Below are positions 361 through 63,639 of a stretch of 64,000 nucleotides of DNA, piece after piece. The stretch spans positions 4,216,001 through 4,280,000 of the forward strand of contig CM119383.1 in NCBI GenBank assembly GCA_051294905.1, written 5' to 3'. Positions within the stretch are counted from its first letter, which is position 1, and each line of letters begins with the position of its first letter. The notes beneath the pieces are model-generated. The model was not told where the DNA came from. It worked only from the letters and a program-made list of their open reading frames with translations, and did not search any database. The position numbers and the translations under genes are program-made. Origin of the DNA: Botryllus schlosseri (lineage: Eukaryota).

Positions 361-1058
361 CGTTCCTTAATAGGTACTTATAAACGCAGAATCGTGTAAT
401 CCCCGAAAATTCGTTTTGGTTTCGAAAAGACTATATCTGAGTCTAGCAGTGCGTTTTAATTTTGTTGTCGTGTATACCTAATACCTATTCAAAGGCCTGC
501 AATTAGTTTCTTATTTTCTCGCGGAATGTGCGCTGTGCAATGCGCATTGCACATTATTCATTTGTCACTCGACACGTAGTGCTTCCTCACTGTTACATTT
601 TCGTAAGTCGCAATACCAGTAGCGATTGTGACTTAAAGCATCCGTGTGGAATTTTATATCTGCCTAACAATCACCGCTTCGAAGGCCAAACAAGCGACCT
701 TTATACGATGCAGAAATTATATTTTTAATGTAACGGGGATTTTAGAGTTAACCGTAATAATTACTCGCAAAAACGGAAATACAGCCGCCTAGAATATCTG
801 ATAATAGCTTTCAATAGAACGTCCCGTATAATTAGGGGGAGATTATCACTTTGTGCTCGTCCTACTGGTTTGCTTTGATGCAAGTTAAGATCATGATGAT
901 AATCAAGATTTACAAATATATTGTCAAGATGTCAATATTCTGTACACTGAGTGATCCCAATCTGGTCGATTCGTATTAGAGAATCCGCCACTTTTGCGTC
1001 TGGGATGTAACGACGACAGTATATAGGCATGTGCCTCTACTACCCGTTACATGTCAAC

Positions 1059-2043
1059 TAGGGATGGTGGGAACCCCTAAAAGGTTCAGGTTCGTGTGAA
1101 CGTGAACCTTTTTGAAAGGTTCTGTGTGAACGCGAACGTGAACCTTATGACGTCACGTGACGCCATATTGCTAATTCCAACCCTACATTTCAGTGAAGTG
1201 ATATATTGATGTACGCGATAGCTAGCAACGGCTCAGGTAATATATAAGCCACAATGCTTAATTAAGCACATGCTGACGTTTTAAACTTCACCAAATGTAT
1301 CAACTGGTGCACTAAAATGCTATAATAAAATCAATTTTCCGTCGCTTTGCCCACAATTTCGACGAGAACATGCAAGGGAATATAAACTCATGCCTTAACG
1401 GTCTAGGCCAGCCCGGACAATGTACTGGACGTCTCACTATTGCTACATTGATATTGCGCAGAGTGTAAAACGGGTTTCTATTCTTGCTTCCGATGTTAAT
1501 TATTACCCCATAAAAAGTTATACAGTAGTCAACATATCAATCGCACGGATTTGGTTTTTATGATACAATAAACATATAAAATCAAGTTGCATCCCGTGCG
1601 CCTGCTAGATTTTTATCAATTTCACTGATTGCTTGAATAAGCATCGTTCGCTGACTTCCCAGATAGCGTATTTCGTCCATGATGTTATGTTATTGCGGGT
1701 CAAACGCACAGTAGAGAGTCATTAAATATTCACTCACGGAAAGCTGAATATTTCGAGCAAACTGTTCTAACAAAGCAACTAAAATATTTGATATTGGCAA
1801 GGTGCATGCTCGTTTAGTGTTGATTTTTTATGCTGCCAGTGCCATGCACAGAGTGGTCCGAAGTTGAAATGCGAAGAATTTAAACCAAAGATGTTATAAT
1901 AGCATGAAAAATTGTAATATATGAAAAAGGGTTCACAGTGCAGAACCTACCAAGGTTCGTTTGTGAACGTGAACGTGAACTTCTAAATTTCTGAGGTTCA
2001 CATACAGAACGCGAACGTGAACCTCACGTTCGCACCATCCCTA
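1059..2043 (+). mobile_element. Non-autonomous hAT (Ac-type) element, TAGGGATG family, copy 1
   Basis: Termini tagggatggtg / caccatcccta; perfect 8-bp TSD atgtcaac (1051-1058, 2044-2051); subterminal gtgaac repeats; homologous throughout to 55453-56583. Confidence 0.92.
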
Positions 2044-56440: not shown

Positions 56441-57473
56441 GTTATAACGAAGTGAAAATTGTAATATATGGAAAAGGTTCACAGTGCAGAACCTACGAAG
56501 GTTCGTTTGTGAACGTGAACCTCTAAATTTGCGAGGTTCACACACAGAAACCGAACGTGAACCTCGCGTTCACACCATCCCTAGTGTAAACCAAACCTGG
56601 TCTAGGACACCTGCTGATCCATCATTTTCTTCAACGGTTCTCAGTTCTCCTCAACTGATGCAGTGTTAATTTTTTAAATACTGTCTCGTTTCCGCCGACC
56701 GCTTGTCCCATTGTACACCGCCTATGGGGCACAATGGGATAAAAAGGTATGTTTTTCAATTGGCTGTGCTTTCGTTATTTCTTCGTATTTTCAAATCATT
56801 TTCCTTTGGAAATGTGTGTTTCATGTTCATCCATCGTTTTGCCAAGGTTCATTGGTATTTCTGGATGTATAATATTTTTATGACTAAATTGTGATCATTG
56901 GCCCTTGTGCCCCAACATCCCTACAATACGAGACGCAATGCGATGTAATGAACAGATCGGAGAATCTCGAAACGATCAAGTACGACCTTGCTTCGACAAA
57001 CTTATACCTGCTTACATGATATAGCCTGCACATTAGTATCGACAATATTAACGGTAATAAGTTTTTATCTCGCAATCAGAGATATATCGGTGTCTTTGTT
57101 CGAAATTTCATACCACCGCATCCGGCGCGCCGTGGAATTTCTTGAAAGGGCCAAATTAAAAACCATTTGAGTCTGTTCATATCTATCGCATCTCATGCGG
57201 TGCAATATGGATTTTAGAGAACAAACAGAACAATATTTGTGTCAGTAATGAAGCTGAAAACCGGCGACATCCACCTCTCAATTAACCATCAAGGACCCTC
57301 GTGAATTGTTAGCGGGATGATGGAGTATGCGACTATCGAACGGAGCACAATACATCGCGCTTTTATGAGTTGAGCGGGGAGCTCTCAACAAGTTGTCGAA
57401 CTGTCAAAATTTCATACCACGGATTCATACAATCTTGTCTGTAATTTCCCGGTTCGTTATAGAGCTAGTAGAG

Positions 57474-59072
57474 ATGTTGCAAAGAGTAGTCCTGGTTTGT
57501 TTGTTGTTGGCTGCATCGCACGCTGAAGACGAACCGAACGACGATACCGGGTAATATATATTTGCACGTGAGGATAAGAATGAACGCACTAATAAGTGGC
57601 TTAAATACGCAGATCATGGGAGATATCATTGGAAGAATTCGAGGCGGTTGCAACGTCAGGAAGTAAACTAGTCATCGACGTGAGGGAGCCGGATGCGGTC
57701 AAACGCGATGAAGTCGATGTTAACAATTACTTAAACATTCCGCTTAATGACGTAGGCAAGTGGAACTCTGCGTTTGAGGTTTCATGCTAATTCTTAGAGG
57801 ATTGCTTGGCGATATGCCTACATGCCGGCACATGAATTTGAATAATTGTTCGTTGTACAAAATTCAAATCAAATTATGGATTGATTTTCCTGTTATATCT
57901 GCCTGGAACGATTGGCGTAACTACAAATCTTTCAGGGAAGATTATAAAAGGGTTTCGTGGAAACGAACTAACTGGGGACATATTAATGCGAAGGGTTACC
58001 CGTTACTCCCACTGCTTACTCGTGATTGTTTGAATTTCTTCACTTGACATTCAGAGTACTGGGTATGGTTTCCGCTCCGTACCAAGAAAATATAACTCTT
58101 TCCGGGACTCACTCCAGCGGGTCCAAGTTCAGTTGCGTTGTCGCACTGGGCGCCGAAGCCTCAATCTCCGCTTCGAGGCTAGGGAATGTTAACTAGATTA
58201 TCTTTTAAACTCCTTGGGGCTTAAACTAGCAACGTCATCTGATCGACAGCTGCGTTTGCAGGTTCCTTAGGGTAGACTGGCCCATGTTGAACAGTGGTTG
58301 ACATAGAACCCTTCTCCACCCGCAACCATCAAAGCTCCCATTGGAATATTTGCTGCTGCCACGAAGGACGACTCATCTGGTCCTTACGGGAGACCTTGTG
58401 CCCGCGGGCAACGCGTTGGTGACCTACGTTTTAATCTAGAGCATTTTCAGTTACCGTGATGCGGGGGCCATTTCGCACTGTTTCTATGTATCAATTTTGT
58501 TGGATCCAAGATCTAACTGTAACCACTAACAAAACTCCCTCGATTAAAATGGAATTAAGTTACTGGCCTTATCGGATTGTGAAGGAGGTAAAGGCAATTT
58601 CAAAATAACGATTTTGAAAAACTTGGCAACAACAAGCGGTTGTCAAATGAAAGTTACGGCGTATGTTTCGGCCGGTTATATGCTTCCTAGAACGATCATG
58701 TCTCGATTTTGCTGGTTGAACATTTCATTTTTCCATAGAATCTGCCTTGGATTTATCGGAAGAGGACTTCAAATGGATGTACGACGTTGACAAACCGGGA
58801 TTGGATCAGGATTTCGTGTTCATATGCAATACCGGCCGTAAAAGTGAAGAGGCGGTGAAACTATCCAGATCGATGAACTTCACCAAGTAAGCGTTATGCT
58901 TAAGCCGGCCGCACAACCAGATGTGCAATGTATCTTCCGTTACAGCGCGAGATATGTCGTGGGTGGAACGGTCCGTTGGATTAAGGAAAGGCCGAACTTG
59001 ATAGTTGACATTGAAGACGAACATCCCGAGAACGAGACGGATACCACCGTTCATTATAAAGATGAATTGTGA
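57474..59072 (+). CDS. Single-domain rhodanese/thiosulfate sulfurtransferase (TSTD1/TSTD3-like) with signal peptide and C-terminal KDEL, 164 aa, 4 exons
   Basis: Exons 57474-57550, 57613-57755, 58739-58886, 58946-59072 (495 nt); intron 2 is GC-AG. Protein: MLQRVVLVCLLLAASHA|EDEPNDDTGSWEISLEEFEAVATSGSKLVIDVREPDAVKRDEVDVNNYLNIPLNDVESALDLSEEDFKWMYDVDKPGLDQDFVFICNTGRKSEEAVKLSRSMNFTNARYVVGGTVRWIKERPNLIVDIEDEHPENETDTTVHYKDEL. Rhodanese motifs: IDVREP, NIP, VFxCxxGxxS, GGxxxW. Confidence 0.88.
58081..58363 (-). pseudogene. 28S (LSU) rRNA fragment in rhodanese intron 2, not a functional rDNA unit
   Basis: The reverse complement reads gcagcaaatattc...gtggagaagggttctatgtcaac...aacatggg...cagtgcgacaacgcaactgaac...gaaagagttatattttctt, colinear with conserved LSU core segments. 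Weak similarity may extend to about 58480. Confidence 0.75.
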
Positions 59073-59202
59073 TCTCAACAAATGTAGAAACTTTTAGGAA
59101 ATACGCCTTGGCCTCGGAATACGACGAGAATGTTCAGATTTTGTAGCAAATCACTTGTTGGGGATTGATTTAGTTGCCATGAGATACAGGCTAGTACAAA
59201 CT

Positions 59203-59573
59203 TGGACAACTATATGATTTTTTGGAGTCTAATTAGAATAATTAGAGCAACACCCGGGTAATCCAATTCTAATCTAATGTTTGAAATAATTACTGAAATG
59301 TGTCTATGCTATAATTATAGGCTAATGTAATTCCTGGTTTTCCTGAAAATACAACGGGAGCACTGTTTAGTCCAAAACGAGCCAAGCTCGGTGTGCATAC
59401 ATTTACAACTCTCGTGCTTATGAGAAAACTTTGATATTTGATATGAACTGAACCGGTTTCTTTTGCTGTATTTCTTCCTAATTAGGAACTTACTTCAATT
59501 CCCAACTTTTGGCGTACTAGCTAATTATAATTCTAATCTAATTTGGAAAATATGAAAAGTTTCTGGTTGTCCA
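59203..59573 (+). repeat. tggacaactag-family element
   Basis: Ends tggacaactat / ctggttgtcca; colinear with 53066-53557. Confidence 0.7.
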
Positions 59574-61191
59574 GCTCTGCTACTGTAGCTAACCCGAAAC
59601 ACCTCCTAGGCTAGGGTACGAATCTATCACTTTTGTCCATCGAGATCAGTGTGCGTGTGGTTGAAGACTGACACTATCGATCATTATCGATTTAGCACGC
59701 GATAAAAGTATTCCAAGTTACCTGAGCATTGAGCATACCAGTACTACAAAACCAGCTTAATGTCAATTTCTTTATCGTTGGTCCCTTCGTTTCATCAAGT
59801 GGTATTCCATCTCATCAGATTTGAATAATGTGTGGGACTGTGGGTTTTTACAGTGTGTACAAAATTGCACATTGTATAATGCACATGTGTGCCACGAAAC
59901 TATATAGTAAAACATCTTGCAGCTCCAGAAAGTGCGGACTATCATCCTTTCTCTCTTTATTGAATTAATATATAATACTGAGTGGAGATATCACAGGCGA
60001 CGGTGAATAGCCTATAGAATCGATATAGCATATTTAGAACTAAAGACACCGCTAGTCACACACTCTATTTAATCACGGATTAGGAATTCCCTCCATTGTC
60101 TCGGGGTATGTGCAACTGCATTCCTTCTGCACCGTGTAGAAATGCCATGCAATCATGCTTGGCGGTGCGCTATGTATTTGCAATATGATTAGGAATTCTT
60201 TCGGCTTACCGGACTGCCGCTGCCATGACGCTGCATTAGATCGATGGTCAATAAATCAAGGTATGTATGTAGCTTGTTGATGAAACTCGAAAACGTTACT
60301 ACAGGATTCGCAGAAAGCACAGTATATCGTTAAATCATCGGTGAAGAATTACGGAAGAATGCAAGGAAAGAGAAAATTGTAGAGCATTTGTGAAATTAAA
60401 ACTTGATAAATCGACTTATTTCATAACAATAAATAATATACACGGTTTTTATGATCGGATGCAAATTATGACAAATGCGATCGGCGTCATCGACCACGGT
60501 GTCACTGTGAATACCCGAGCCTTTGAAGAAAACGTAACGATTTTCCAAAGCATTTTATGAAATATTGCGGACCTTAAGACTGCAAAAGTGCACGGGGAAA
60601 AGCTATAGGCTAATGTTGAACTCTTCAGACCGATATTGAGTAGGTCTGGATAAATTCTGGTTTATTCGATTAAAAGTTGAATAATAAGATTCGAGTCGAG
60701 CCGAAAACATTCGGGTTTATTTCAGTATGAATATATTATTCACTCTTTAAATATTAATTAATAATATGACGTCATAACAGTAATCATGACTTAAACGTTC
60801 AAATATATTGAATTTTGGGGCAACAAAGGGAAAATCATGCCAGTTACACGTCGTGTACGATAATTTTGCATTTCGGGACCATCATGAATATTTCGTAGCA
60901 ATTTACGACCGTTATGGGGCTCGATCACTATATACCTGACAGAAATATGGTTCCACGAATATTCTTAGCTTTGTACAGCACGTTCTTCGACGCTGACATA
61001 AGGCCAGTTAAGGTTTCGAGACTCCAACGGTGTGAATGTGAATGTGTGTGTGCGTTGAAATGGTATTTTTCGTTCTTAAAGTATGGCTCTTGATGTAAAG
61101 GCTTATATTTTCGTTACTGTAAAGAAATTGACTCAATCTCGACTCGAATCACTAGAATTGAAGATTAAATAGTATATTCATATTGAAATGA

Positions 61192-61225
61192 ACCCGAATA
61201 TTTTCGGCTGACACTCTTCAGGGGT
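61192..61225 (-). ncRNA. Minimal type I hammerhead ribozyme (left arm)
   Basis: ACCC-CUGAAGA-GUGUCAGCC-GAAA-AUAU-UC-GGGU on the minus strand. Confidence 0.7.
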
Positions 61226-61625
61226 AATCGTCAGCAACTAGTAGAGAATTGGAAAGAACATTGTATATCAACAATCGTATCACAAAATATGACGTCACCA
61301 GCATGAAAGAGAGAGCGTTCAATGTACTATTTTTAGGTGGTACACGAACTCCTTTTGTTGACAGAGTTTTGGTTGGTGTATTTTGATAAAAGTTGATTCC
61401 AAGGCACACAAATGGAATTGTGTGCCATTTGTGTGCCATTTGTGTGCCTTGGAATCAACTTTTATCAAAATACACCAACCAAAACTCTGTCAACAAAAGG
61501 AGTTCGTGTACCACCTAAAAATAGTACATTGAACGCTCTCTCTTTCATGCTGGTGACGTCATATTTTGTGATACGATTGTTGATATACAATGTTCTTTCC
61601 AATTCTCTACTAGTTGCTGACGATT

Positions 61626-61659
61626 ACCCCTGACGAGTGTCAGCCGAAAATATTCGGGT
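61626..61659 (+). ncRNA. Minimal type I hammerhead ribozyme (right arm)
   Basis: ACCC-CUGACGA-GUGUCAGCC-GAAA-AUAU-UC-GGGU; predicted cleavage after 61655. Confidence 0.7.
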
Positions 61660-61858
61660 TCATTTCAATATGAATATACTATTTAATTGTATATTGAAGT
61701 TCTGTACCTCCGAGAAGCTCTAGAATTGAAGAGCTCGAAGTGATGTGCCAATTCCTATAATATTGGCCGGTGTTACGTCATAGAGAAAACGCGGGCCCGG
61801 AATTAATTACGCATGTAATACTGGATGTAAATTGAAACCGTTTGTATTTCAGTTAGAC

Positions 61859-62530
61859 CAGGGGTGGCCAACCTTTTTGGCCAAAGGGCCAAATGCAATT
61901 GACCAACCAGCGCGCGGGCCACTAGCCGCACCAAACGCAAAAATTGTTCAAAGTTTATAGGTCAATAATATTGCTACTTGAGTATATTGCGGGTCTGCTG
62001 TATATCGCTGGGCTAAGTTCACAAGGATTTGACTATTCGGCGCCTGGAGATATCGATATCGAAAGCTTCGGCAAACATGCGTCAATCATTTTGTGCCTAT
62101 ACGTTTCATCTTCGACGGTCCTTCTGCATGTTGGACGACACTTTCTCTCGTAATTAAGAATATAGTTACACTCGATCTGGTACATTATGCGTTCTTTCAT
62201 TTTCAGTGGGGGGTCTAACAATATTTTAAAAGCAAGAAATCGAGTGACATCGTATTGCGGGAAGCGGGGAGAAAATTATTACTTTAGATAAATCTACCGC
62301 AGAACATTCTGCTTTATTGTAATGTTTGAAGATCTACCAAAATGCGACTGGCCCATGGATCTGCCGACGCGTCGGAACTGATATTTTAGTCGTTCAATTC
62401 GAAGTGTTGCGGCCAGACTAATCCAATTTTTGGTTGGCTTTGCAAGTTCACAATCTGGGCAATTGATTTTTGATAATATTAATAATTTCATAAATTACCT
62501 CGCGGGCCTCTCAAAACCTACTCGCGGGTC
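61859..62530 (+). mobile_element. hAT Buster-type MITE (family of 37160-37874), right end truncated
   Basis: Left TIR caggggtggccaacc after agttagac; colinear with 37160-37860; right TIR missing. Confidence 0.8.
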
Positions 62531-62624: not shown

Positions 62625-63257
62625 TCATGGTTTTACGTACAATCCGTCGACGCCGTACCTACGCAATGGCCGGCCTAGCGTTTGCATTCGTTGGTCGTCC
62701 GGTTCCTCGAGACAAATCGGCGGTATCGGGCTTCGACTACGCTCCGACCTGTCATGCATACCTATCAGACCCGCCACGCTTTTTCTACGTCTTAGAGTAG
62801 AGCCGCCGCCGCGCCGATACGGCATCCCCAACCCCGGGTTTGGCGGTGATAAAGTCTGCTTCTTTTGGTTGGAGCTAGGCACTAACCTCCTGAATAAACT
62901 CAACCTACGCTCCGGTTTATTATTACCGGAGACACTTTTGCGCCGTTTGATTTCGCGGCATAGTTCTGCGAAAGCCTCTCGTAAGCTTTCTGTTTTTCCG
63001 TTATCGTTGGCTGCACAAGCGCAGCACTCGAAATAAGCCGCCGGTATCGTGAGGCATAATTTCCTCGCTCTTTCGGGCGAGACCTCGCGACTGTGCTTTA
63101 GGTCGGCTTTGTTCCCCACAACGACGTAGGATATGTTCTTGGCCGATTTCTTGTATTCCAGATCTTCCTTGATTTGCGCGATGCTTTCGAATGATGGTTC
63201 CTTCGTGACGTCGAACACGATCATGAAGCCGTCCGCCCAACTGACGATGGTCTCTTC
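62625..63257 (-). CDS. RERG: Last coding exon of a RERG-like Ras-family small GTPase; upstream exons lie beyond the window
   Basis: Acceptor ttctttctgtaag|GAA at 63257 (phase 0). WADGFMIVFDVT, G4 VVVGNKADL, HSREVS, G5 FECCAC and ELCREIKRR match RERG-type sequences; no CAAX. The symbol is a subfamily-level call. Confidence 0.78.
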   Translation of the reverse strand, partial: EETIVSWADGFMIVFDVTKEPSFESIAQIKEDLEYKKSAKNISYVVVGNKADLKHSREVSPERARKLCLTIPAAYFECCACAANDNGKTESLREAFAELCREIKRRKSVSGNNKPERRLSLFRRLVPSSNQKKQTLSPPNPGLGMPYRRGGGSTLRRRKSVAGLIGMHDRSERSRSPIPPICLEEPDDQRMQTLGRPLRRYGVDGLYVKP

Positions 63258-63639
63258 CTTACAGAAAGAAAGCACGCAGTCAGAATCAGCAGTCTTTTAT
63301 TACATATCGCTACCAATATGCTGGTAATCAGTATTTCAAAATATATATCCATCCATAGTGTAACTGCATGTTGGGAAGAGCAGCATATGGCCGTTAGACA
63401 TCAGCACATTGCACTATTGCAGTCATGAGAGTGAGACTCGTGCTTGTATTGTTTTTTTTTTTTTTTTTTTTTTTATATTTACCTTTCCTAACTAAACATT
63501 TTTTCACAGCCAGACTGTTCTGAGTCAAGTGTACCTGTTTGATGCTGGTGTGATCAGACTAGATGACCTTCACGGTCTTATCGATCATTCCTATCTAATA
63601 CCGAATACTGTGCACGCATATTTTCTGTACCACCATCAC

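Follow-up and report, generated by a model that had tools for sequence, protein, structure and literature searches.

A 64,000-nucleotide (nt) stretch of the Botryllus schlosseri genome was analysed (GenBank assembly GCA_051294905.1, contig CM119383.1, positions 4,216,001 to 4,280,000 of the forward strand; hereafter the window). At window positions 57474-59072, on the plus strand, it carries a gene whose four exons splice in frame to a coding sequence of 495 nt, that is, 164 amino acids (aa) and a stop codon. The gene is real and actively transcribed, and its product is predicted to be a single-domain rhodanese of the TSTD1 type, which an N-terminal signal peptide and a C-terminal KDEL would direct to the endoplasmic reticulum (ER). 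An earlier reading of the letters of the window (the original prediction) had proposed the four short exons and the 164-aa protein, and both were borne out by in-frame splicing and by RNA joints at the exact positions. The features of the gene are as follows, in window coordinates.

57365-57473, plus strand: 5′ untranslated region (UTR); a contig begins at 57371, and loose ends with the template-switch oligo lie at 57365 and 57461
57474-57550, plus strand: coding part of exon 1, encoding the predicted signal peptide and, after it, the acidic N-terminus of the mature chain; GT donor, phase 2
57474-57524, plus strand: predicted signal peptide MLQRVVLVCLLLAASHA, with its ATG at 57474, followed by the E of the mature chain (EDEPNDD...)
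57551-57612, plus strand: intron 1, 62 nt, GT-AG; joint found in two contigs and 27 raw reads
57613-57755, plus strand: exon 2, N-terminal half of the rhodanese domain (SWEISLEEF...IDVREP...LNIPLNDV)
57756-58738, plus strand: intron 2, 983 nt, GC-AG; donor TAG/GCAAGT, acceptor CATAG/; dispersed repeat inside it at 58152-58322
58739-58886, plus strand: exon 3, with the TSTD1-type segment ESALDLSEEDFKWMYDVDKP, the active-site loop CNTGRKS and the NFT sequon
58825-58845, plus strand: active-site loop CNTGRKS, residues 103-109; codon of Cys103 at 58825-58827
58876-58884, plus strand: NFT sequon, in exon 3
58887-58945, plus strand: intron 3, 59 nt, GT-AG; joint found in two contigs and 13 raw reads
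58946-59072, plus strand: coding part of exon 4, with the end of the rhodanese domain (ARYVVGGTVRW), acidic tail, NET, KDEL and stop
59031-59039, plus strand: NET sequon, in the acidic tail of exon 4
59058-59069, plus strand: KDEL, the protein ending ...HYKDEL; stop codon at 59070-59072
59073-59474, plus strand: 3′ UTR, reaching at least to 59474, from a 1000-nt contig of run X3

In the spliced protein these elements follow one another in the order MLQRVVLVCLLLAASHA and EDEPNDD..., IDVREP, LNIPLNDV joined to ESALDLSEEDFKWMYDVDKP, FICNTGRKS, NFT, ARYVVGGTVRW, DIEDEHPENETD and HYKDEL. There are two cysteines, Cys9 in the signal peptide and Cys103 in the loop, the latter being the sole Cys of the mature chain. 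The single mature-chain Cys within CNTGRKS, the two sequons, the acidic tail and the terminal KDEL had all been described from the letters, and all were found where they had been placed. The GT dinucleotides at 57752 and 57761 were tried as alternative donors of exon 2 and break the frame; the GC donor at 57756 alone fits, and it is confirmed by reads. A scan of positions 56500-62500 with Rfam gave no match within the rhodanese gene.

To follow the transcript, RNA evidence was collected over positions 56800-59700 from two runs of different studies, available as Logan contigs, and from two raw RNA sequencing (RNA-seq) runs. Both contig runs contain each of the three splice joints (57550/57613, 57755/58739 and 58886/58946), and run X20, from a third study, crosses them with 27, 13 and 13 raw reads, respectively; all three introns are thus recovered in three independent studies. 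The first joint was mapped as 57549/57612, which with the cut moved by +1 is 57550/57613 (GT..AG), and the second as 57752/58736 with three ambiguous letters, which is equivalent to 57755/58739 (GC..AG). A single 1000-nt contig of run X3 spans all four exons and represents the whole mRNA (57371-57549, 57612-57752, 58736-58886 and 58946-59474). The cDNA 5′ ends, seen as loose ends with the SMART template-switch oligo, lie at 57365 and 57461, both upstream of the ATG at 57474, and place one transcription start near 57365-57371 and a second near 57461. Since the sole upstream ATG (57365) closes at once (ATG AGT TGA) and a stop in frame with the ATG at 57474 is found at 57366, the latter ATG is the first usable start. 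Transcripts lacking exon 1 or the KDEL exon were looked for in particular: among the listed joints of the RNA runs none skips either exon, no alternative form was seen, and the transcripts always carry both.

Reads were also found inside intron 2 (58152-58322), and an extra exon at this position was considered and ruled out, as the reads derive from a dispersed repeat that occurs at least 40 times in the genome. This repeat is about 170 nt long and its copies are 72-76% identical; some of them are regularly arrayed on contig C28, with a period of 12-15 kb. One RNA run shows a weak signal of the repeat. Just past the 3′ UTR, positions 59516-59612 reach a summed contig depth of about 1747 in RNA run X1, with many odd joints and loose ends, and look like a highly expressed repeat.

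An intronless HSP70 gene of the same assembly is 97% and 95% identical to the two HSP70 proteins of Botryllus schlosseri and 82% identical to that of Styela clava, which points to a botryllid or styelid colonial ascidian; the assembly contains no mitochondrial genome. The RNA reads are heavily polymorphic, in keeping with such a host, most being 95-99% alike, and the coding variants of three RNA runs could be used to examine selection (103 synonymous and 389 nonsynonymous sites). Twelve of the 20 coding variants are synonymous and eight, mostly conservative, are nonsynonymous (A37V, K44Q, D53E, R117K, S118T, D144E, H159P and Y160S), which gives a ratio of nonsynonymous to synonymous polymorphism (pN/pS) of about 0.18 (binomial p = 1.6e-4). 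Purifying selection acts on the protein that the gene encodes. Within the active-site loop the variants are synonymous only (G106, S109), the signal peptide shows one synonymous change, and the KDEL is invariant although the two residues that precede it (H159 and Y160) vary.

The family of the protein was established by several sequence comparisons. Against the sequences of the PDB, the best match of exon 3 is human TSTD1 (6bev, E 2e-4, residues 70-118), followed by yeast RDL2 (6k6r, E 1.8e-3), and exon 2 matches residues 47-75 of the same RDL2 structure, colinear with the match of exon 3. Pfam was scored on single exons: exon 3, which is a third of the domain, scored 12.8 bits with PF00581, under the cut-off of 22.2 bits, and no other exon gave a match. 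The spliced protein was then compared with a hidden Markov model (HMM) that we built from 55 single-domain family members carrying PF00581, and scored 88.1 bits (E 4e-26), while the best of 2000 shuffled sequences reached 6.0 bits. The whole model is 31-45% identical to many PF00581 proteins, including 40% identity to protein P0010 over residues 22-134.

In a profile that blends the exons of this protein with one paralog and three insect relatives (A5), the whole rhodanese domain is tiled by exons 2 and 3 together with the beginning of exon 4. The scores obtained with this profile are 100 bits for TSTD1 (6bev), 94 for RDL2 (6k6r), 81 for RDL1 (3d1p), 33 for PspE and 31 for GlpE. The loop CNTGRKS aligns with CKAGRRS, CRSGARS and CKMGGRA of the relatives, and is of the six-residue sulfurtransferase type with the Cys at its start, not of the seven-residue Cdc25 type. 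As proposed originally, the segment ESALxLSEEDF..Y.V.KP is TSTD1-like: exon 3 is nearest to TSTD1, and profile and tree are both TSTD1-like rather than PspE-like. The likeness of the loop to that of Escherichia coli PspE (CNAGRQS), also pointed out from the letters, is present, but it amounts to the family-typical C-x-x-G-x-[RK]-S, which relatives carry as CKAGRRS or CRTGRRS.

A maximum-likelihood tree places the protein within the eukaryotic clade with a support of 97/93, and does not resolve its sister. Joining the protein to the bacterial rows costs 6.7 log-likelihood units (lnL) in the approximately unbiased (AU) test (p = 0.061), a value that is not decisive alone; a bacterial origin, or membership with PspE, was rejected on the introns, the TSTD1-type insert and the profile scores. 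By these comparisons, the predicted protein is a member of the eukaryotic single-domain TSTD1 / RDL / Hsp67Bb (CG4456) rhodanese group.

Within the same genome (495 Mb, 219 contigs) we searched for paralogs, and found that it carries further TSTD-like genes, the KDEL rhodanese gene itself being single-copy. One paralog, on contig C4 (L013), has an exon equivalent to exon 3, with both flanking introns at the same position and phase: in both genes a phase-1 acceptor falls in the same codon, and a phase-2 donor follows the same ..FT-K/N codon. These two shared intron positions and phases support a native family member that would have been re-targeted to the secretory pathway, as suggested in the original prediction, the ER location being itself a prediction. 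Exon 1 encodes exactly the signal peptide and a linker, and the last exon adds the acidic KDEL tail. A further paralog, on contig C6, is a single-exon cytosolic form whose N-terminus, MVDVSPEN, is without a signal. Joining the KDEL protein to the clade of the cytosolic same-genome paralogs gives an AU p of 0.37, by which a recent duplication from this clade is neither shown nor rejected.

The same search revealed at least six tandem single-exon rhodanese open reading frames (ORFs) of 171-173 aa at 16.42-16.59 Mb of contig C4, with the loop CGSGKRS and a PF00581 score of 29.8 bits. They group with the cytosolic C6 paralog in the tree, and are a lineage-specific expansion of TSTD-like genes.

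The predicted signal segment has a short, positively charged n-region MLQR, an h-region VVLVCLLLAA (10 residues, mean Kyte-Doolittle value 3.39) and SHA as its c-region. Cleavage is predicted after Ala17, where Ser occupies position -3 and Ala position -1, and an acidic stretch follows. This is the segment that had been read from the letters as a signal peptide cleaved between SHA and E, and it is present at 57474-57524. The mature chain of 147 aa has an isoelectric point (pI) of 4.2, with 37 acidic and 15 basic residues, and no further hydrophobic segment (maximum 19-residue Kyte-Doolittle mean, 0.53). A membrane anchor was rejected on the shortness of the hydrophobic core, and a mitochondrial presequence on the lack of Arg-rich amphipathic character. 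At the C-terminus the acidic tail closes with an exact KDEL, which shows no variant across three RNA runs; this combination is classically the mark of soluble ER-resident proteins. From these signals the protein is predicted to enter the secretory pathway and to be retrieved to the ER, by which it would depart from the cytosolic or mitochondrial location of the TSTD1/RDL/Hsp67Bb group, differing from it in location, not in fold or chemistry.

Relatives of the protein were searched among 1.84 billion representative sequences. Exon 3, in an exhaustive phmmer search, gave 13 matches, with at most 52% identity, the named ones being insect 'thiosulfate:glutathione sulfurtransferase-like' and Hsp67B2 proteins; profile A2 gave 15 matches and profile A5 gave 1642, with insect CG4456-like proteins on top. 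An xDEL C-terminus was found in 0 of about 150 relatives fetched. About 12 dipteran CG4456/Hsp67Bb-like relatives have signal-like N-termini without a retention signal (from Lucilia, Calliphora, Cochliomyia, Toxorhynchites and chironomids, and a tandem Anopheles protein), and the signal-like segment of the Lucilia protein P0069 ends in ...AASHA before E, the same SHA-E ending as in the Botryllus protein. The group probably has undescribed secretory-pathway members elsewhere, to judge from these N-termini, and the signal-bearing dipteran Hsp67Bb/CG4456-like proteins may be undescribed secreted rhodaneses; none was described as secreted in the literature searched.

The signal-like relatives include P0069 (Lucilia), P0097 (Calliphora), P0002 (the Anopheles tandem protein), P0094, P0068, P0071, P0151, P0037 and P0126. 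A protein from a marine eukaryotic metatranscriptome (P0008) also has a signal-like N-terminus and no retention signal. The closest single-domain relative of exon 3, P0010 (52% identity), carries the NCBI label Sarracenia purpurea var. burkii. Despite this pitcher-plant label, its near copies and best relatives are animal/insect-type TSTD1-like proteins, and the sequence may stem, as a contaminant, from an organism living in the pitcher.

Full-text literature searches found no ER-resident, secreted or KDEL-bearing eukaryotic rhodanese. A 2023 review of human rhodanese-fold proteins does not contain 'endoplasmic reticulum', 'signal peptide', 'secreted' or 'lumen', and a 2025 review of the ER redoxome (PMC12781119) contains neither 'rhodanese' nor 'TSTD'. 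A described, widespread KDEL-rhodanese family, which would have taken away the novelty, was looked for and none was found. The original remark that no animal class of ER-resident rhodaneses was known to have been described stands in that no counterpart appeared in the literature or among the approximately 150 relatives. It has to be narrowed in view of the dipteran predictions: the KDEL tail is unique, a route into the secretory pathway is not. What is supported as new is a TSTD1-family sulfurtransferase with a predicted ER address; the fold and the family were already known.

The protein can be compared with four known systems. Human TSTD1 (KAT, 6bev) and yeast RDL2 and RDL1 (6k6r, 3d1p) have the same single rhodanese domain and the same length, and share with the Botryllus protein the pattern ESAL-LS--F---Y---KP before the loop as well as a six-residue loop of the form C-x-x-G-x-[RK]-[SG]. 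The Botryllus gene and the human KAT gene (PMC10135228) were compared by exon count: each comprises four exons, separated by three introns, and extends over 1.6 kb. However, TSTD1 and the RDL proteins are cytosolic or mitochondrial, without signal or retention sequences, whereas the Botryllus protein comes with a signal-peptide exon and with an acidic tail ending in KDEL; in addition, its G-x-IPGA region is replaced and its identity to the best relatives is about 35-45%. The insect Hsp67Bb/CG4456 proteins are the nearest relatives in sequence, and some also have a hydrophobic, signal-like start. In contrast to the Botryllus protein, the approximately 150 relatives fetched are without xDEL, so that such insect proteins would be secreted rather than retained, and they form a clade of their own in the tree, apart from the Botryllus protein.

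E. coli PspE (2jtq) resembles the Botryllus protein in its signal peptide, single Cys, oxidising extracytoplasmic compartment and loop (CNAGRQS against CNTGRKS). However, its homology is remote (with profile A5 it scores 33 bits and TSTD1 100), and it is bacterial and intron-free, with neither the TSTD1-type insert nor a need for a retention signal, and the relation, as judged from the sequences, is one of analogy, not of membership. The soluble ER residents PDI, BiP and calreticulin, which the KDEL receptor retrieves, share with the predicted protein a signal peptide, an acidic C-terminal stretch, a terminal KDEL and an acidic character (pI 4.2), but their fold and chemistry are unrelated to those of a rhodanese.

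Taken together, we give a probability of about 60% to the reading that this real, expressed ascidian gene encodes a single-domain sulfurtransferase of the TSTD1/RDL/Hsp67Bb group which would have been re-addressed to the early secretory pathway. Several points weigh against it. The signal peptide and KDEL were called by sequence rules, and both ER residence and enzymatic function are predictions. The branch of the protein in the tree is very long (2.37 changes per column), and neither an ortholog nor the protein itself was found among the 1.84 billion representatives with a 48-aa exon and a blended profile as queries, although this absence is weak evidence because of the nature of these queries and because entries of this genome or of near relatives may be missing from the set. 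Run X24 has zero coverage of the gene, and expression is therefore not universal. Finally, KRDEVDVNNY stands in place of the usual G-x-IPGA region, and the substrate preference may have shifted accordingly. That the HIPGA motif gives way to DEVDVNNY had been noticed at the outset and is real, but the altered catalysis that was suggested from it is weakly supported: the cytosolic paralogs of the same genome are also without the motif (SSKIQSKRWLNIPY), and the replacement is for this reason a trait of the lineage rather than a sign of lost catalysis.

For the re-addressed sulfurtransferase, the following mechanism can be proposed. The protein would be translocated into the ER, lose its signal peptide after Ala17, possibly be N-glycosylated at N120 or N152, and be retained in the lumen by KDEL-receptor retrieval. 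There, Cys103 would cycle between thiol and persulfide, taking sulfane sulfur from thiosulfate, glutathione persulfide (GSSH) or polysulfide, and would hand it to thiol acceptors. To judge by human TSTD1, the likeliest acceptors would be PDI-family proteins with a thioredoxin fold or the glutathione of the lumen. The best acceptor of human TSTD1 in vitro is thioredoxin, with a Michaelis constant (KM) of about 17 μM (PMC10135228), and because of this preference the abundant thioredoxin-fold PDIs would be the natural candidate partners in the ER. PDIA1, ERp57 and ERp72 are reported targets of persulfidation, with no known writer and of unknown significance (PMC12781119). As an outcome, persulfides would be added to, or removed from, ER oxidoreductases and cargo, or luminal sulfane sulfur would be buffered. 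We propose tentatively, and with clearly less confidence than the re-addressing itself, that this could be the first ER-resident sulfurtransferase, dedicated to placing persulfides on PDI-family oxidoreductases and secretory cargo or taking them off, or to supplying disulfide formation with sulfane sulfur.

An oxidant function similar to that of PspE was also considered, in which Cys103 would be sulfenylated and form mixed disulfides with folding substrates, to be resolved by PDI, thus providing an auxiliary route for disulfide formation. A single-Cys rhodanese in a periplasm-equivalent compartment fits this scheme, and there is a precedent in E. coli, where PspE, through its sulfenic form and together with DsbC, restores disulfide formation in the absence of DsbA (Chng et al. 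2012, as recounted in PMC4138195); polysulfides are, moreover, able to drive disulfide formation (PMC11921322). However, the PspE effect required overexpression and a mutant background, the Botryllus protein is distant from PspE by the profile scores already given (33 against 100 bits, A5), and no sequence feature separates the oxidant from sulfur transfer. We consider this function unlikely.

Less likely still is an enzyme that would be mainly secreted, into the blood plasma, tunic or gut lumen, for the detoxification of cyanide or sulfide or the handling of thiosulfate, with the KDEL being masked or slowing its exit. The approximately 12 dipteran relatives and P0008, with their signal-like N-termini and no retention signal, make secreted rhodaneses of this family plausible, and KDEL proteins can escape the ER, as in the externalisation of PDIA1 described in PMC11342103. 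The exact terminal KDEL after an acidic tail, invariant in three runs while the two residues before it vary, argues instead for retrieval.

Inactive rhodanese domains usually lack the catalytic Cys, which is retained here, and this bears on the possibility that the protein is a catalytically degenerate rhodanese fold serving as a binding or chaperone-like module of the ER. The very long branch, the replaced G-x-IPGA region and the change from Arg to Lys at loop position +5 would be in line with degeneration, and non-catalytic rhodanese domains are common, TBC1D23 being one example (PMC7274447). Against this, the six-residue loop is intact, with the catalytic Cys, Gly+3, Arg+4 and Ser+6, the variants in the loop are synonymous only, and the odd N-terminal motif is common to the cytosolic paralogs of the same genome, and we regard a degenerate fold as improbable. 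An artefact, that is, a non-coding transcript or a chance reading of signal peptide and KDEL in an ORF, might be suspected of a gene that is known at the DNA and RNA level alone and for which no ortholog was recovered, but it is very improbable in view of the exact splicing of a 164-codon ORF over four exons, the profile score of 88 bits against at most 6 for shuffles, and the excess of synonymous polymorphism (p = 1.6e-4).

Downstream of the gene, on the opposite strand (62625-63275, minus), the window contains a 216-aa open frame that matches PF00071 with 65 bits. It encodes the C-terminal portion of a Ras-family GTPase, which bears a long basic tail, and has no evident link to the rhodanese. 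Between the two, at 61331-61520, there are sub-gathering Rfam matches on both strands to the plant microRNA families MIR7504 (71 bits) and MIR5565 (60 bits), most likely hairpin look-alikes. Elsewhere in the genome, in the region of C9:15479151-15479483 (L002, positions 796-2028, minus strand), we identified a single-exon ORF of 410 aa that is an MnmH/SelU tRNA 2-selenouridine synthase, scoring 372 bits with NCBIfam NF008752 (cut-off 266), with an N-terminal extension of about 60 aa and on a chromosome-scale contig. MnmH/SelU is mainly a bacterial enzyme, and this copy could be a horizontal transfer, a contamination or a rare eukaryotic SelU.

To our knowledge, eukaryotic rhodanese-type sulfurtransferases are known from the cytosol and mitochondria, and an ER-addressed TSTD1-type enzyme would show that the secretory pathway, too, can have enzyme-catalysed sulfane-sulfur chemistry. 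So far the finding concerns one gene in one fast-evolving tunicate lineage, which limits its weight. If it is correct, ER persulfidation would have an enzymatic 'writer', and the periplasmic PspE/DsbC logic would have been reinvented in a chordate. As a small single-Cys enzyme (147 aa when mature) with built-in controls, Cys103Ser and deletion of the KDEL, it could also become a tool for ER persulfidation. In addition, the finding points to the uncharacterised Hsp67Bb-like rhodaneses of flies and mosquitoes that carry predicted signal peptides.

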